From Hormiphora californensis (Eukaryota > Animalia > Ctenophora): a stretch of 64,000 nt of DNA. Under the pieces are notes generated by a model. It saw only the letters and a program-made list of their open reading frames with translations. It did no database searches and was not told where the DNA came from. This document shows positions 8,001 to 44,002 of this stretch, in pieces (positions within the stretch are counted from its first letter, which is position 1; each line of letters starts with the position of its first letter). The position numbers and the translations under genes were made by a program. The stretch spans positions 7,006,001 to 7,070,000 of the forward strand of contig CM035357.1 of the NCBI GenBank assembly GCA_020137815.1, read 5' to 3'.

Positions 8001-10282
8001 CGTTCCTAGGTGGTACATTAGGACAAAAGGAACCCGTCCATGAATTTTTACTAGGCACCCGCCTCCATAATTTGTTGTGCTTTTTTTTTGTACTGTTTGT
8101 ACGAAAAATTGGAATTTCTAAGAGAGAAAATCTTTCCAAATCGAACTTTCTATCCAAGAAAGTATTATCGAATCGCAATTTCTAAGCGAGAGAAATTTTC
8201 CCGAATCGCAATTTCTTACCGAGAAAATTTTTCTCGAATCGTATTTTCTAAGCGAGAAATTTCCCCGAATCGCAATTTCTTACCGAGAAAATTTTTCTCG
8301 AATCGTATTTTCTAAGCGAGAAATTTCCCCGAATCGCAATTTCTTACCGAGAAAATTTTCTCGAATCGTATTTTCTAAGCGAGAAATTTCCTAGCATCGC
8401 AATTTCTTACCGAGAAAATTTTCTCGAATCGTATTTTCTAAGCGAGATATTTCCCCGAATCCCAATTTCTTACCGAAAAAATTTCTCGAATCGTATTTTC
8501 TAAGCGAAAAATTTTCCCAAATCGCAATTTTTACCGAGAAAATTATCCCGAATCGAAATTAGTACCGAGTAAGTGATCTCCAACTGAGAAAATTTTCTCG
8601 TAATCGTAACGGTAATCTGAATCAATGATTTCGTTTTTTTAGAATTTCAAAAACGTGTACTTTTACACACTTTTTTAGTATGTAATTTTAGCAGGAAAAT
8701 GGAACTAAAAACGTTCATATATATGACTAGCGCACCCATTGGGTGCGCCTCAAGTAAGGGCTTTTTGATAACCCACCCGGCTTCGCCGGGTGGTTCTTTT
8801 CGTCACTTTCAACGTGAATAAAACGGTTGCCATGGCAACTGAATTGGTAACTATGGGGACTGGCATGTTAAAAGTCATTCGAAAATATTAAGAAACTTCC
8901 ACTGGAAGTTCCAAAAGTGTGAGCAACAGCTTTGGGCACATAGAGTATTTTATGAAGGAGCAGTCTGTCGCTTAGATACCGCTTAACGAACGGCCATCAC
9001 TTCGACGTCGTTCATCTCCAAATTATAATATAGATAGATGGTACATGAACATAAACGGAACCCAGCTATGTATTATTTATACTTTTATCAGGCACCCACA
9101 TCCTTCATTATTTTTTTGTATTTTTTTGTATTGTTTGTATGGAAAAAAAACAGGAATTTCGGATACTTTTATGTATGGTCCGTACAAAACCGTACAAAAC
9201 CGTACAAAAAAATAGGTTGGAACCCCCCCTGGTCACTTCTCTCTTGATTTACAGACGGTATAAGAAGAGGGCTCACATCATGGGGTTCTTTTTGGGACTC
9301 GCCGAAGGAGTTATTTTCTTCACTTTTGCTGCTGTCTTTACCTACGGAAACTACTTGATGCAGCGAGATTTGATCGATTTTAACAGAATGATGAAGTATG
9401 TGTGGGAGCTGGTAGGGAGGGTAGACGGTTACCGGTAGGGGGTCAAGGAGGGGGAGGGTCTAACTGCGAATTAAAATACCTTCCTGAATACTAAACAGTA
9501 ATTACAATACTTACTCTCCCTGTCAAGGGTATTCTCAGGCATTGTATTCTCTGCCATGACTGTCGGAGAGACGCTGTCAATGCTGCCTGATTACAGCAAA
9601 GCCAAGGGTTGTGCGATATCGCATCTTCAAGCTAATTGGCGATATCCCGCAAATCGATGCTTATTCTACGGAGGGTAGTAAGGTAAGAACAGTGGAGGAG
9701 GAAGTTAGTATTATCTGGGATAGCTCTCTTTTTTTTTTTTTTTTTTTTTCTCGCGACCTCTCCGCGTCCTTAGTGTCACCGAAGGCTAGCGCTATGTTGG
9801 GGCCCTTTGTGAAACTACGAAACTCCCAATGCCCCTTGTTTGCCCCCAGTGCCTTCTCGGCCCGGCGCTGGTCATCCTGGTCACACCTGGATTCTGGTAT
9901 CCAGGTGTGACCAACAAAGTGAATACCCAACTTAGGCAAACAAAGTTTGGTCCGGCGTCTGGTACAACGGCACATCCTATACATCGCTTGGCTAGCGGGG
10001 GGAACTTAAACAGGGCCGTCTTGACCTCTCATTTTGAGCCTATGGTGCGCGGAGCCCAAATCAATTGATAATATTAATATACCGATTGATCTGTGCAGTG
10101 TGGTCAAGACTGCACCCTGTCAAGTGTGGTATTCCCAGATGATGAAACGTAGAGTAAAAGAGGTGGGGTGATAGGGGAGCAGTGTTACCACAAGGAGGTA
10201 GAGAGACAAGAGACGGGGAAAGAAGAGTGGGAGAGAAAGAAGAAGAAAAGTAGAGTAAGATAGTGGTAAGGAGCTTATGCGA

Positions 10283-10368
<86 letters not shown>

Positions 10369-13300
10369 ACTAGGATATAGATTGGCAGGAGGGGTCTGGG
10401 GGCCATGGAGCATTCCGCTGGCAAGCGCAAAGGTGGCCCCATCCAATACCCATCCAATACTCATCACCCGAAAAGGTAATTTAATTTAGATCTAGGTTAG
10501 TAGGTTATGACGGGGCACTAATTGATTCAAGGGCTTTATGGAGTTACTAATTTAATTTTAAACAACAATAGGGTCCGACAAAAGTTCAGTATTCACACAG
10601 CGAACTTGGGTGATTAGGGCGCCGTAGCGGAAAAGTTTCCGGATACGCTGTATTTTGCAAAAAAAAAAAAAAAAAATCTAACCAATCCCAACCCTGATCA
10701 CAGCCTTGGCCCCGGCACTCACAACACTGCACCCAGTTTCTAGCGCTACCATACAGTCCAGCATCCCCCTGAAGAAAGCACCACTCCGCTCCGGACGAAA
10801 AGATTGTCGAATTTGATGTTGTCAACCCAACTCTCGTGCGCGGATTGTTTTTGCGCGTCACCTATATTTATTATTCTTAAGGTGCTGTGCGCGTGATCCA
10901 AATGTAAATTTCACCTGCGCATGACTCTCGGGGTGACACATCTAGAAAAACCCGACAAACAGTGAGTCCCCTTAGGGATCCCATTGCGTAGGAACTTACA
11001 GCATTTGATGGATGCTTGGTACCGTGATGGGGATGGGAAGAGATGCTCCAACCTTGTACTGATATGGTAGTTTCCGTGGACCGTGCCTCTCTAATTAATG
11101 TGATTTCATGATGTGCTGCGTGAATTCATAACTTGCTGCTTGCTCAATAAATAGTTTTACGGGTTTATAGCAGGAAGCGACCGAATATTCGGTTCGGTTC
11201 GATTCGGTTCGGAAATTCGGTGTTTTTTGGGCGGTTCGGTTCGGTTCGGTTCGGTAGGAAATTTTGGCCGAACCACCGAATTTTTTGGTCAAAAAATGCC
11301 CAGAAATCGGTCTTTTTCATGCAAAATTTTTCAATTATTGTATGGATTTCAATGTCAATTTCGCCGTATTAACCCTATTTCGAATCGGTGGTGCTATGTG
11401 GAAATGATTTCGCTAGTTAGCGGGTTCGATATGGATTGATTTGATACCTGACTTCCCGTCGAATCGTGTCCTCATGAGAGGGTCAACAAATTCAGAAACT
11501 TTTTTTCAAAAAATTCATGGAGAGCACCGATCAAGGTGTTAAGAATCATTCTCTGAAATTTTGTAAAAAAAGTTTGGAAAATATTTCAAAGTCAATTTTA
11601 TGGAAAATTTTCTATGTCAATTTTTGCGTACGAATCGTGTTTCGAATCGGTATTGCTAAGCGGGAGTGATGTTGCTAATTAGTGGGTCCGAAATGGATTA
11701 TGCTGATACGTGATCCCCCATCAAATCTAATTAGGAAGTTTAGGGGAAACGATTCATGTTTCAATAAATCCTGCTAATTAGCGAGAGCACTGCCGCATAG
11801 CATCACCGATTCGCAACACGATTCGTACGGCAAAATTGACATATAATTTTTTTTTCCGAAATTGACTTTGAAATATTTTACAAAGTTTTTTCACAAAATT
11901 AAATGTTTCTCTAAAAATTCATGGAGAGCATCGATCAAGGTATTGAGAATCATTACCTGAAATTTTGTGAAATTTTTTTTGTGAAAAATATTTTAAGTAA
12001 ATTATGGTATACGAATCGTGTTTCTAATCGACAATGCTAAACGGGAGTGATGTTGGTAATTAGTGGGTCCGAGATGGATTGTGCTGATACGTGATCCCCC
12101 ATCAAATCTAATTAGGAAATTTAGAGAGACACGATTCATGGTTCGTTTAATCCTGCTAATTAGCAATACCATTCCCGTATAGCATTGCCGATTCGAAACA
12201 CGATTCGTACGCAAAAATTGACATAGAAAATTTACGATAAAATTGACTTTGAAAATTTTTTCACAAAATTGATTTTGAAATTTTTTCAAACATTTTTTAA
12301 CAAAATTTCAGAGAATGATTCTCAATACCTTGATCGGTGCTCTCCATGACTTTTTAGAGAAACATTTATATAGAAAAAGTTTTGTATGGTTCGGTTCGGT
12401 TCGGTTACCGAAATTCGGTTCGGTTCGGTTCGGTTCGGTAAAAAAGTTTTTCAAATTCGGTTCGGTTCGGTTCGGTGGAAAAAAACCCGGTTCGGTCGTT
12501 TCCTGGTTTATAGTATAATAGACGGGGTTTATTGTAGAAGAAAGCAATCAATTTCGATGCACAGCATCATCATCAGGCTCAAATTAGTGTTAAAAAGTTT
12601 GTGTTAAAAATGTTGAGGGGGTGATCCCTGTAGTGATCTCACGTGGTTCGAAGTTTGATCAGGCAGTGTTAAAACTTTTCAACACTACTTTAGACAAATT
12701 AATTTGAGCCTGATGATGATGATGCTGAGCATCGAAATTGATAGCGTTCTTCTATAATAAAACCCCGTCTACTCACTTCGTACAGCAGGAAGGAGAAAAC
12801 TAAACTTCCTCATTGATATGCGGCTAATAAACAATCAACCGATCGCGATCCTTATTCCCTATCAACCTTGGCACACATTTTCAGTTTGGGCACACATAAA
12901 CAAGACATCAAATAAAGCAAGGCTTTGTACATTCTCCAGTCTCCTAACACGTTGTTCGGTTGAGCAACTCAACAACAAACACACTGATTTTGGCCGCGAA
13001 AAGGGGTACAACCTGTCAGCGCATTGGCTGTCCCTAATCCCTATTCTCATTTCTGAACCGTGGTCAGAGCATTGGCCTGACAGGGTACAACGTGCCCAAA
13101 GGCTGGTTACAAACAGTATAACAATAACATAGAATTATCTCGGGGTGAGTGAGAAACTAGGCTACAATAATGAATATATCCCCATTTATTATTATTACCT
13201 CATATGATGCGACGTGTCATCAGGGGGTCACGTTTATCCAAATATCGAGCTAGTGACATCATCAGCTGCCCAACGTGGCTCCATAGCTGCAGAGGGGTTA

Positions 13301-14137: not shown

Positions 14138-15537
14138 CCTTTCTCGTTTGGCCTAAAGCCAGTTGAATCCAAATCCTTGGAGATATTTCACAGTCCTCCA
14201 TCCCCAAGATTAACAGTTTTTAACCGTTTCTAGGTCTCTCATTCGATATTAAAGTTGGTAAAACCATTGCACTGGTAGGACAGAGTGGGTGTGGGAAGTC
14301 AACCTCAGTACAGCTCACACAGAGATTCTACGATACCCTTGGGGGTGAAGTGGTAGGTGTAGAACTGTAGAACCATCTGTCGTTTTACAAAGTGGGTACC
14401 AGTGTTCTAAATTCACCCCCCCCCCCCCCTCCTTAAATCCTCCTGTTAGGTTGAGTATCAGAGACATATCGTTGTAAAATGTTGTGAAAAACATTTGGTT
14501 CAAATATATATAATTCAACCCATACCTTCAGATGATAGACGGTATAGATATCAAACAATTGAATGTGCCCCACCTTCGGCAACAAATGGGATTCGTATCA
14601 CAGGAACCTGTCCTGTTCGACTGCTCTATCGAAGGTACATTACAAGCTGTAGTAGGGCAGCTCATACCCATGTTACACAGGTCATATATTTGTGTTACCT
14701 GGATGAATTCCTCTGACTATAATCACTCCCCTTCTCTGACTCCAAGAGAGTATACTCTCCTATCACCCCCTCGCATTCTGGAGCTTCCCCTCTCCCTGCT
14801 TATCACCCCCTCCCCTCCCCAGATAATATCCCCATCTATCACCCCTCCCCCCCCCCAGAAAATATCCGGTACGGGGCACTGTTCAGGGATGTGACTGATG
14901 AAGAGGTGATCAAGGCAGCCCAAAACGCAAACATACATAACTTTATTGCTTCACTACCCGAGGTATATTATAAAATCCCTACAATACAACTTCTGCAAAC
15001 TTCACTAATCGTGATTTAGTTGTCTCATGCTGATCGTGAGTCGAGAACAGAACCACATACCTATACAGTTCCGCATATAATGCTGTTTTCCTACAGGGCT
15101 ATAAAACGCGTGTAGGAGAGAAAGGCACTCAAATGTCTGGTGGCCAGAAACAGAGGATAGCCATTGCCCGGGCTCTCGTCCGTAATCCTAAGATTCTCCT
15201 TCTTGATGAGGCGACCAGTGCCCTTGATACAGAGAGTGAGAAGGTAAATATTATAGATCATTGAAAGGGTGGTATAAAAACCTCCAATCAATTGTCAACA
15301 TGTAATAACAGTTCACATCCTAATCAATGTTTATTTTCTCCCAGGTGGTCCAGGAAGCTCTCGACTTAGCGAGAAAGGGACGTACATCACTGGTTATTGC
15401 ACACCGGCTGTCCACCATTCAGAACTGCAGACCTCATCTGTGTTATCCAAGAGGGGAGGATAGTAGAGATTGGCACTCACAAGGAGTTGATGAGCAAGGA
15501 TGGGGTGTACAGGAACTTGAACAAATCAGCCAAATAA
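2015..15537 (+). CDS. ABCB1: ABCB1/P-glycoprotein-type (MDR) ABC transporter, 3' half (TMD2 + NBD2); 5' exons lie upstream of the window
   Basis: Exons 2015-2105 ([16 protein letters not shown]), 6844-6969 ([13 protein letters not shown]), 7233-7404 ([12 protein letters not shown]), 9255-9395, 13362-13515 (LPDYSKAK), 13921-13999 (FNYPSRP), 14234-14352 (Walker [10 protein letters not shown]), 14532-14634 (VSQEPVLF), 14859-14962, 15097-15243 ([27 protein letters not shown]), 15345-15537 (IAHRLSTIQ). All have GT-AG ends. One +1 indel near 15426 is likely an assembly error. The symbol denotes the subfamily, not proven orthology. Confidence 0.95.
2681..3241. mobile_element. MITE with ~35-bp terminal inverted repeats
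   Basis: taaagtcggatttttttaaactgtcaccccccc at the left versus gggggggtgacagtttcaaaaaatccgacctta at the right; internal 16-bp-stem hairpin at 2732-2772. Confidence 0.75.
3253..3922. mobile_element. Palindromic MITE with TTAA target-site duplication (Kolobok/piggyBac-type)
   Basis: TTAA at 3249-3252 and 3923-3926; ~310-bp arms agtaagagtggc.../...gccactcttact are near-perfect reverse complements. Purine-purine (AG) start fits Kolobok better than piggyBac. Confidence 0.85.
3927..5662. mobile_element. Second TTAA-flanked inverted-repeat element, left arm interrupted by a nested hairpin-ended insertion (~3946-4420)
   Basis: TIR gcatttttcagaatttttt / aaaaaattctgaaaaaaatgc followed by TTAA at 5663-5666; further inverted arms 4423-4640 versus 5230-5400 and 5601-5640. 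Confidence 0.7.
6975..7230. repeat. Intronic C/A-rich minisatellite (ccctaacaaca and cccctact units) filling almost a whole ABCB intron
   Basis: Visible tandem units between the donor at 6970 and the acceptor at 7232. Confidence 0.9.
7619..9229. mobile_element. Non-autonomous DNA transposon with G-rich TIRs and an 8-bp TSD, carrying an internal satellite
   Basis: TSD tggtcact at 7611-7618 and 9230-9237; TIR gggggggttccaacctattt / aaataggttggaaccccccc; ~30-bp unit satellite at ~8110-8600. Confidence 0.85.
9528..9682 (+). pseudogene. Duplicate ABCB exon with a +1 frameshift
   Basis: Identical to 13362-13515 except for an extra A at ~9616 (gtgcgAtatc versus gtgcgtatc); 155 versus 154 bp. Confidence 0.75.
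11171..12505. mobile_element. Non-autonomous hAT-type transposon
   Basis: Perfect 8-bp TSD gtttatag (11163-11170, 12506-12513); TIR caggaagcgaccgaa / ttcggtcgtttcctg; subterminal (ggttc)n arrays and internal repeats. Confidence 0.9.
12519..12835 (+). mobile_element. Short repeat containing a spliced-leader copy fused to a minimal hammerhead-like motif, preceded by an inverted partial copy (Penelope pLTR/retrozyme-like)
   Basis: SL-like aaacttttcaacactactttagacaaattaatttgag (12672-12708), then c-ctgatga-tgat-gatgc-tga-gcatc-gaaa-ttgata; inverted copy at 12519-12600. The 3' portion recurs at ~42135-42220. Confidence 0.6.
13757..13878. mobile_element. Small MITE in an ABCB intron
   Basis: taaagtgcgtttcaaacgacttgacc / ggtcaagtcgcttgaaacggacttta inverted termini. 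Confidence 0.65.
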
Positions 15538-41705: not shown

Positions 41706-44002
41706 ATGGAGCCAATTGAGAGCTGTTTGGACTTGGCAGGCATTCAAAGAACAAGTGGTATTATCATCACCACATTTTCCTTCCTCGCGGTGTTCCTAAC
41801 AGTGCCATACTGGCAGTATATCTACAGGCAAAACACATGCTGACCCCTCAATACTTCCCCATCATCAATGTTGTGGTATGTTACCAACATATTGATGGTT
41901 AGACTAATTAGTAGAAGTAGGAGAGGGAATAATAATCGTCCTTCGTTAGAAAACTGAATAATTTTGATGATTTGATAGTCAAAACCACCCAAGGTATCCG
42001 ATTTGTTCGAAATGTAGAAAAGAGTCAAGAGATGCCATAACCCACACATGCTTCTTCACCAGGTATCAGATCTGTGCAGCGCCATTGTCGGTGTAACCTT
42101 CCGAGGACCTGGAATGATCTACCCCAAGTAAGAACGTGTTCTTCTACCACAATAAAAAAACCCGTCTAGTTCTACTCAACCGGAAGGAGAAAACTAAACC
42201 TCCTCATTGAGTATGCAGTATACAGTCGGACCCTGTCAGAGCATTGGCCTGACAAGGTCCGACCCCGATTTACCGGAAGGATAAACTTCCCCCGATACAG
42301 TATTTGACCCCGATTTGGTATATTTCTAGGCTATTCTACGGGAGAGAACCAAAACCGTGCAGCGGCGGTGGTGGTGGAGTTATGGATCATGTTCAGGAAC
42401 GACGGGTTTTGCATCTTTGCACCATACATCGCGTGGGCCTTTGCATATCAGAATGCCTCTGCGATTGCAATCATGTCTGTGGATAGAATGCTGGCCATAT
42501 CACTTCCTTTCTGGTGAGATATTACAGAAATAATTTTTCATTATCATGGTCCTAATAAGTATGATAAAAATAGATCGATCACTCATATATTATTTTCAAT
42601 GTCAAGAGCCAAATTGACAAATTCTTACTGTGCTTGCACCTGGTAGCACAGTACCCTCGTACAGACTACAGGTGAGATAATTCTCTTCCTAGGTATAAGG
42701 TGACTATGAGCAAGAAGATTGCAAGACGTATGACCTACATAACCTGGATAAGTGTTAACTCCTACCTGTTCCTCCACCTTGTCTTATATAATACCAGCAT
42801 AACGGAAGTCAGGTAAGCTGGCAGTCTAAGTAACTAGACCTCAACTCCAGACACTGGACAGAAACACCTGAGGAACAAACATCTTTCAATATGACACCAC
42901 TACCAACGACCCGCCTCATTTTACCTCACACCTACAATCCCCTCATGAGGCGTGTTTGCTAGAGGGGTCTGCAGCGTATGCACCAACGCTCATCCATAAT
43001 ATCTACCACAAGGTGGGAGGAGACAGATGGACGGTGTATGTACTATCTACTAGTGAGGATCAAGTTGGGTTATCTTGGAGGTGGAAGATTATCGAGGATG
43101 TCATATTCTTTATTGTACCTTTTGTCATCACGATATTTTGTTACATCGTTATTATTATCAAGGTAGGATTCATAGCATGATGTTCTACACTCAGTATTAT
43201 TAAAGTATTTTAGTTGTTGGACAGAGTATTTTAGTATTGTATGATCGAGATTTCAACTGTAGGATGGAGTCTTATTGAACTTGTTTTTCAGATGGTTAAG
43301 TGCCGGAATGACTGCCGGTTGAACTCTGTCCACAAAGTGCCCTTTTGTACCAGTCTATCTGTGGTGATATTTAGCTGCGTGCCCTGGATACTCTACTTTA
43401 TCTATCATTACTTTATTGATTGTGACACAAGTGACAGTAAGTACTTGTTTAGAAATTAGAAACCGTGACGTACGGTATATCGAGATCAGAAAGTACTCAT
43501 CTTTAACATCAATATCTTTTTCAGTTATGGTATTGACCTACATCTTCTTCTATGTCTCTCCTCTGATCAACCCTATCTTATTTTCAATGAGAAGCAAGAC
43601 CTTCCACGATTTGATTTGGTCTCACGTTCACGCTGCTCTGAGGAGGCTCAGAGTTAGTCTTGCTCGACAGGTAGTTGATCTTTAGAGAGAGAGATTAAAT
43701 GTCGTGATTTACAATTATTGTCCAGTTCAAAAATTTGAAATTGCAGACACAAACACATTTGTTTGATGTACTGCATAAGAGAGAGGATACTATTATGAAT
43801 CTGTTAGTGTTATGAATCCTTCAAGGCCTCAAGGGTAAATTCAACCCCCTTGTTTACCGAAGCTAAATATGTTATCCTCAAGTTATCAGATACAAGGAAC
43901 AGAGAGGGAACAGTTGTTAGGAATGAAAATGTGGTACAGAGCTGCTATTCTCAGTCTAGTGGATCTAACTTACATTTTCTGCGTCAATCAACAGAAATGT
44001 GA
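41706..44002 (+). CDS. Class A (rhodopsin-family) orphan GPCR
   Basis: Exons ~41706-41875, 42063-42127 (VSDL), 42330-42513 (TM3 ...AIMSVDRMLAISLPF), 42694-42812 (TM4 Trp), ~42950-43162 (FIVPFVITIFCY), 43292-43436 (SCVPW), 43525-43670 (LINPILF). Two homopolymer indels are needed; the 3' end is approximate. Confidence 0.85.

Follow-up and report, generated by a model that had tools for sequence, protein, structure and literature searches.

Metazoan Penelope-like elements (PLEs) carry minimal hammerhead ribozymes that are described by four listed marks, lack a hairpin on helix III and are thought to act as dimers; the published examples cleave poorly in vitro (PMC4209133). In Penelope of Drosophila virilis, an intron has its 3' boundary at the 5' end of helix I, and spliced and unspliced RNAs give different hammerheads (PMC4209133). 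The genome paper of the ctenophore Hormiphora californensis reported a 44-nt spliced leader (SL) with 718 genomic copies that is present on at least 56% of Iso-Seq reads, and also noted clusters of genes that apparently share a first exon (PMC8527503). Here we describe a locus in a 64,000-nt stretch of this genome (contig CM035357.1, positions 7,006,001 to 7,070,000; hereafter the window) at which a DNA copy of the SL is joined to a PLE-type minimal hammerhead. On the strength of its sequence, this locus is very likely a head-to-head insertion of a short, non-autonomous retrocopy of a PLE 3' end that was made from a trans-spliced RNA.

Several described systems come close to this arrangement. 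Like the PLE minimal hammerheads of Cervera and de la Pena 2014 (PMC4209133), the Hormiphora motifs have a CUGANGA...GAAA core, an unpaired base between positions 9 and 10.1, a G10.1-C11.1 pair, covarying helix II families within one genome, a palindrome at 15.2-16.2 and a short helix I; opposite-strand motif pairs (100-700 bp apart) and a location in the end repeat of the element are likewise shared. What sets the Hormiphora units apart is that the acceptor would serve trans-splicing of the SL and that DNA copies carry the leader immediately 5' of C3. PLE insertions as described by Craig et al. 2021 (PMC8557442) are similar in their 5' truncation, an adjacent inverted copy at the 5' end, a 30-40 bp tail and a nearby microsatellite, but the 5' boundary of the Hormiphora units would be set by a trans-splice site and not by incomplete reverse transcription. 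Animal non-long-terminal-repeat retrozymes (Cervera and de la Pena 2020, PMC7229834; bioRxiv 10.64898/2026.07.22.740005) are also short, non-coding, PLE-related, equipped with type I hammerheads and presumably mobilised by PLEs. Their tandem direct repeats yield circular RNAs, whereas the Hormiphora units are solo or head-to-head and start with the leader. The original prediction for this locus had suggested an SL-bearing retrozyme, a label that we reject because neither the window nor the 46 units examined contain direct tandem copies.

Among known tags of this kind, the closest is the relict leader (DinoSL) of dinoflagellate retrogenes (PMC6050394, PMC12014239). A leader in DNA at the 5' end there marks the copy of a trans-spliced RNA, and the RNAs concerned come from host genes that were moved by the enzymes of other elements. 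In Hormiphora, the tagged RNA would instead be the 3' end of the transposon itself, in an animal and in amplifying families. A full-text literature search brought up no paper in which spliced leaders are relevantly linked to hammerheads or to Penelope elements; trans-splicing is unmentioned in Craig et al. 2021 (PMC8557442) and in the 2026 retrozyme preprint, and the SL join is unmentioned in PMC4209133.

The leader-hammerhead fold-back in the window

The sequence of the region was read directly, with the addition of inverted repeats, a family alignment and genome-wide pattern searches; the bounds of the 3' region and of the tail come from an alignment of 15 family members. The features are as follows, with positions in the window.

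12519-12609, minus strand: left inverted arm, with a leader remnant (12578-12609), linker C (12577), a minimal hammerhead (12546-12576) and part of the 3' region
12546-12577, minus strand: candidate minimal hammerhead of the left arm with its linker, in the canonical spacing of the family; cut predicted between 12546 and 12545
12610-12665, plus strand: filler of 56 nt between the arms, at the axis of the fold-back; derived from part of an unrelated, highly conserved high-copy repeat
12665-12708, plus strand: 44-nt DNA copy of the spliced leader, the last 37 nt with 1 mismatch to the published leader
12709-12743, plus strand: linker C (12709) and minimal hammerhead of the right arm (core CUGAUGA, 12710-12716)
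12744-12815, plus strand: 3'-terminal PLE region, with GCGUUC, AATAAA (12756-12761), CCCCGTCTA and a terminal hairpin GGAAGGAG...CTTCCTC (12788-12811)
12816-12860, plus strand: tail extension of ~45 nt (ATATGCGGCTAATAAACAATCAACCGATC...CTTATTC), optional among family copies
42135-42207, plus strand: 5'-truncated family copy, consisting of the 3' region (AATAAA, CCCGTCTA, terminal hairpin) without leader and without hammerhead

Comparison with the published H. californensis leader revealed a single mismatch over 12672-12708, an A to G change in TTTAAAC, which matches the identity and the one mismatch in 37 that had been given for this segment in the original prediction. The 5' end of the leader (from ~12665) has a few further mismatches. 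The RNA data consisted of contigs from one small run labelled as the same species and from two marine metatranscriptomes. RNA contigs that cover 12672-12708 diverge mostly at 12708/12709 into many unrelated sequences, with a few continuing by chance to 12723, and 12708 is therefore a real trans-splice junction of the leader. In the window, no GT donor follows 12708, and the sequence from 12709 onward is CCTGATGA. The presence of the leader might suggest a variant or decayed SL RNA gene, an identity that the sequence itself rejects and to which we assign next to no probability: the GT donor is missing at 12709, PLE sequence comes next, and 94 other loci, including a tandem array on contig 13 (see below), do have the exact leader end followed by GT.

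In the right arm, the core is followed by an extra TGA (12717-12719) and an unpaired U (12720), giving four unpaired bases (UGAU) in total. Helix II then pairs GAUGC (12721-12725) with GCAUC (12729-12733) around a UGA loop, and GAAA (12734-12737) runs into the palindromic helix III segment AUUGAU (12737-12742) and A17 (12743). The left arm reads, on the minus strand, AATTTGAG (12585-12578), C (12577), CUGAUGA (12576-12570), a single unpaired U (12569), helix II of GAUGC (12568-12564) and GCAUC (12560-12556) with the loop UGU, GAAA (12555-12552), AUUGAU (12552-12547) and a U at position 17 (12546). The leader of this arm has an internal deletion, and the arm is truncated at 12519 such that the 3' hairpin is missing.

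Rereading the sequence bore out most of what had been claimed for the locus, namely an SL linked by one C to CUGAUGA, after which come a hairpin, GAAA and the self-complementary AUUGAU, and an inverted, internally deleted copy on the minus strand, whose extent is 12519-12609. The proposed span of 12519-12835 was right about the locus but not about its end, because the unit runs to ~12815 and the tail to ~12860. Similarly, the recurrence of the downstream part at ~42135-42220 does represent a family copy, now refined to the 5'-truncated copy at 42135-42207. The UGAU junction of the right arm had been read correctly but is not the family form: it is a private 3-nt TGA expansion, and relatives, including a twin of the locus on contig 7, have a single unpaired base.

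We aligned 25 distinct SL-joined motifs and one SL-less motif, all collected by a pattern that requires the core. The core CUGANGA...GAAA is present in both window arms and is invariant in the 26 aligned sequences, as the search pattern demanded. In the five-pair helix II, 93.8% of cells are paired and four of the five pairs show compensatory change. The helix II covariation score is 0.711, compared with 0.187 in shuffled alignments (0 of 500 reach the observed score) and at most 0.112 with slid partners. At the closing position, 25 of the 26 sequences retain G10.1-C11.1. Nearly all motifs have one unpaired base, a U, A or G, after A9; the left arm of the window conforms to this, while the right arm, with its four unpaired bases, departs from it. 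Helix III from A15.1 is self-complementary in 21 of 26 sequences (10.6 +/- 2.3 when shuffled), with examples including ACGU, AUAU, AGUACU, AUUAAU and, with G-U pairs, AUUGAU, and position 17 (H17) is G in none of the 26. Helix II covariation, a conserved G10.1-C11.1, one base after A9, a palindromic helix III and a non-G H17 match the traits in PMC4209133, and the motif is therefore predicted to be a Penelope-type minimal type I hammerhead with dimer-type architecture. This agrees with the earlier proposal of such a hammerhead, with a palindromic stem III, in inverted partial repeats.

Two paired copies of the hammerhead may cleave after position 17, and the 3-nt TGA insertion at the junction of the core and helix II probably disables the motif of the right arm. 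Helix I, for which the PLE minimal type would have ~4-5 pairs, has two contiguous pairs in the right arm and in most relatives and four in the left arm (GAGC/GCUU); elsewhere, it has one pair in the two largest zero-linker families and five in an SL-less motif at locus L091. Thermodynamic folding of monomers and dimers recovered helix II and, in the left arm, GAGC/GCUU. The hammerhead core is beyond this method, and the predicted dimer minimum is an extended duplex.

The two arms form inverted repeats of 52 nt at 90% and 49 nt at 78% identity, and the whole composite, including the filler and the right flank, has a 93% twin on contig 7 in which both arms are complete and each hammerhead has one unpaired base. 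The tail extension is common to the window, the contig 7 twin, L012, L016 and L068, and is missing in 9 others in the family alignment. The filler (12610-12665) has dozens of genome matches at 93-98% on its own, and its parent repeat is longer on both sides at other loci. These inverted repeats, together with Rfam matches limited to hairpin-like look-alikes, would fit a miniature inverted-repeat transposable element (MITE) with ~90-nt arms as its terminal inverted repeats. However, most family members are single arms or pairs of unequal arms, 5'-truncated copies occur, and the same sequence forms the 3' end of elements that encode a GIY-YIG endonuclease. In addition, the constant feature of the family is the inner ends (i.e., the 5' end of the leader), while the outer ends vary (i.e., a truncated arm and an optional tail), and no target duplication is seen. 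A MITE or other DNA transposon is thus rejected on account of variable outer termini and the missing target-site duplication, and we regard this identity as barely credible.

Joins, parent elements and the splice acceptor

A pattern consisting of the leader end, 0-8 nt, CUGANGA, 9-22 nt and GAAA, with pairing not required, matched the genome 162 times, compared with 0 and 1 matches for the reversed pattern used as a control. The joins span at least 15 families that differ in linker and helix II sequence, with linkers that include none, C, G, GA, UU, CAGC, CUACUA and AUUAUC. The dispersed non-autonomous retroelement family of the original prediction is supported, and the junction of SL and core is far from unique to this locus. 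Many of the SL-joined units are head-to-head pairs with the axis at the 5' end of the leader, and solo units occur too. Minimal hammerhead-like motifs as a whole number 743 genome-wide (68 in the control), and most minimal hammerheads are therefore not SL-joined. Abundant families without the SL include CUGAAGA-C-GUCUGA...UCAG, CUGAAGA-C-GGAU-UCUA-AUC and CUGAUGA-G-GGC...GCC, and the hammerhead-like motif of L076 (contig 2, 1980255) forms seven pairs in helix II and lacks both the unpaired base and a leader.

The genome contains at least 66 GIY-YIG matches, many of them in tandem or inverted arrays and several in open frames of 790-1039 aa. When the genome was searched with 40 nt of the window family's hammerhead, allowing up to three mismatches, we recovered 6 exact SL-joined copies (TTGAG/C-CUGAAGA..., where the slash marks the join) and 29 identical native copies (TATAG/C-CUGAAGA-U-GGUGC...). 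At least 11 of the native copies sit 349-352 nt downstream of a GIY-YIG match, some of which lie in frames of 790-953 aa. The hammerhead is therefore found, with the same 3' end of ~75 nt, as the tail of an endonuclease-encoding PLE, and the 3' region downstream of the window hammerhead is the sequence that follows the hammerhead in native copies. We regard the hammerhead of the short units as a passenger that came with the PLE sequence. At L091, a GIY-YIG open reading frame (ORF; Pfam 24.1 bits) ends ~180 nt before a minimal hammerhead that has a five-pair helix I and an acceptor-like TTTGTTTACAG just upstream.

Native copies have an AG after a U/A-rich tract precisely at the position of the SL join, one base before C3 of the hammerhead. 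The same holds in a second family, in which the acceptor reads TTATAG/ in 9 native copies and TTTGAG/ in ~40 SL-joined copies, and in a third, with TATTAG/ or TACTAG/ in 5 native copies and TTTGAG/ in ~15 SL-joined copies; the acceptor context is known for five bases before the join. By the precedent of D. virilis Penelope, an acceptor at the hammerhead edge would be a recurrent feature of PLEs, which does not imply a function. These positions also bear on whether the join could have been made by a reverse transcriptase that switched template from PLE RNA onto SL RNA or an SL-capped mRNA, without any trans-splicing of the PLE. Template switching clearly happens at these insertions, as evidenced by the 56-nt filler and the fold-back arms, but random switching would scatter the join points, whereas the join falls exactly after AG behind a U/A-rich tract in three independent families and the leader part always stops exactly at its 3' end (...TTTGAG), just as it does in mRNAs. 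We therefore consider such an origin of the join very improbable.

The acceptor also addresses the proposal that the leader's final GAG plus C form the 5' strand of helix I, such that the ribozyme would be assembled only after trans-splicing and the two processes would be functionally coupled. GAGC does pair with GCUU in the left arm (4 pairs), the 1.1-2.1 pair forms in all 21 scorable sequences, and the intron of D. virilis Penelope ends at the 5' end of helix I (PMC4209133). Comparison of native TATAG/C with SL-joined TTGAG/C, however, revealed that trans-splicing leaves positions 2.1-2.3 (C, G, A) unchanged, because the leader and the outron both end in AG and the C at 2.1 is the element's own; the leader adds at most an outer G-U pair. 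The native AG thus occupies the same two positions as the terminal AG of the leader, and the innermost helix I pairs exist without trans-splicing. Furthermore, helix I has only 1-2 contiguous pairs in most SL-joined families, compared with 5 in the SL-less motif of L091, and families with 4-8 nt linkers pair the linker and not the leader. The coupling that the original prediction advanced is consequently not supported, and we hold it to be very unlikely.

A proposed origin of the units

We infer the trans-splicing event, the responsible enzyme and any catalytic activity from sequence, and the following scheme is put forward on that basis. Host SL trans-splicing would act on PLE transcripts at the acceptor that abuts C3 of the hammerhead, producing a capped RNA of ~165 nt that consists of the SL, the hammerhead and the 3' end of the PLE (the last ~120 nt of the element). 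This RNA would retain the 3' end that the PLE reverse transcriptase/endonuclease recognises and could thus be copied into the genome; the leader would head the DNA copies because the RNA template had been trans-spliced. Upon reaching the 5' end of the leader, the cDNA would switch template, first onto an abundant repeat RNA (the source of the 56-nt filler) and then onto new cDNA, and the switch back onto new cDNA would give the inverted second arm. Marks of retrotransposition are present in the form of a 5'-truncated copy, a variable tail, solo units beside inverted pairs and foreign filler at the axis, and the architecture of PLE insertions (5' truncation, an adjacent inverted copy and a tail) is found in the family.

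Five results weigh against this origin. First, no SL joined to the hammerhead of the window or to any PLE hammerhead was found in the RNA contigs examined, which covered the leader alone. Second, the best 150 of 1399 candidates from a search for RVT_1 were scored; all belonged to other types, and none adjoined a GIY-YIG match. Third, no native copy of the window's own GAUGC/GCAUC subfamily exists within 3 mismatches genome-wide, and its direct parent is thus unseen; this subfamily has SL-joined copies only, which means either that its parent has been lost or that SL-capped units propagate and diverge on their own. Fourth, no target-site duplication was definable at the locus, where the composite and its flanks are duplicated on contig 7. 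Fifth, Rfam hammerhead models gave no match in the window at the gathering threshold, nor in 12300-13100 at E values up to 10, and the only Rfam matches were to plant microRNA precursors, which the hairpin formed by the inverted repeat resembles. The last of these weighs little, because as a control the same models also miss the GIY-YIG-linked, PLE-type hammerhead of L091. In addition, none of the 100 listed places had an SL-joined hammerhead within a few kb upstream of a same-strand GIY-YIG match, and a full-length SL-capped PLE was therefore not found among them.

A wider interpretation, which we offer as a doubtful possibility, is that an acceptor within the 5' strand of helix I is an ancestral functional module of PLEs that takes the form of an intron end in Drosophila and of an acceptor for the SL in the ctenophore. 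In hosts with an SL, the acceptor would cap read-through transcripts, cleavage and trans-splicing would be alternative fates of the same site, and SL-capped mini-RNAs would found self-propagating lineages similar to short interspersed nuclear elements. Bearing on this interpretation is the ratio of ~40 SL-joined to 9 native copies within one family. The leader encoded in DNA possibly helps the re-expression of SL-capped units.

Matches to the family also occur in environmental data. Two low-depth contigs of a 2016 marine metatranscriptome (X2) match 12543-12585 and 12796-12832 with 3-5 differences and then diverge; these contigs derive from related copies, and RNA or carried-over DNA of the family is thus present in such data. 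A metagenome scan for the leader-plus-core join returned only two identical chance matches, without leader or helix II.

Surroundings of the locus and leader copies genome-wide

An imperfect (GGTTC)n array lies at 12387-12500, 20 nt from the truncated left arm, and a similar ACCAGGAA-CGACCGAA stretch flanks L013, another copy of the family. A target repeat common to both is possible, consistent with the microsatellite bias reported for PLEs. The parent repeat of the filler often occurs in inverted pairs 150-375 bp apart (L020-L030, around position 1500); it contains GGTTCGAAG, yet has no tRNA match in Rfam, and forms a long hairpin in L020. A short palindromic motif, CTGTCAGAGCATTGGCCTGACA, recurs with its complement at 13016-13085 and 42233-42258 of the window and again on the minus strand of L091 (~950-1045), beside the PLE on contig 11, and represents a dispersed small repeat. 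Two plus-strand ORF fragments flanking the element (9139-9438 and 14532-14894) resemble ABC-transporter exons by eye, and Pfam gave no match to either. If they are such exons, the element would be intronic, with its plus-strand arm in sense orientation.

The genome contains 626 occurrences of the leader core, and the exact leader end is followed by GT at the 94 loci mentioned above. In the array on contig 13 (3189667-3195338), the leader plus GT is found seven times with ~740 bp spacing (6 forward, 1 reverse), which is probably a true SL RNA gene array. We also sampled 30 leader loci (L031-L060, contig 1), which were the first by coordinate and were unselected for downstream sequence. Eight of them have the hammerhead join, two continue into GT, and ~19 of the other 20 lead into intronless ORFs. 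These ORFs, which lie within 60 nt of the sampled leaders, are 250-490 aa long, with coiled-coil-like regions, one PHD finger and weak CCCH matches. Many of the leader-ORF loci share a conserved hairpin in the 5' untranslated region, GTAAC-R-GCCCC-nnn-GGGCAGAA, and at L039 an upstream frame with a FADD-like motif ends ~350 nt before the leader. These leader-capped intronless ORFs look like retrocopies of an ORF1-type retroelement or of gene families.

About a quarter of the genomic leader copies are PLE hammerhead retrocopies and only ~15% have a GT donor, while the rest, as judged by the 30-locus sample, are mostly leader-capped elements with intronless ORFs. Because leader copies are mostly retrocopies, most genomic leaders are decoys and not SL RNA genes, which matters for annotation and offers an explanation for the published 718 leader copies and the apparently shared first exons of H. 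californensis. The joins would amount to DNA-level proof that transposon RNA is trans-spliced in a ctenophore, an event that we infer from its genomic products. They suggest that RNA processing, and not a promoter or truncation, can define where a retrocopy starts at its 5' end, and they place a splice acceptor at the edge of a PLE hammerhead in a lineage far removed from Drosophila. Through the position of this acceptor, the role of the PLE hammerhead and its link to splicing become testable.

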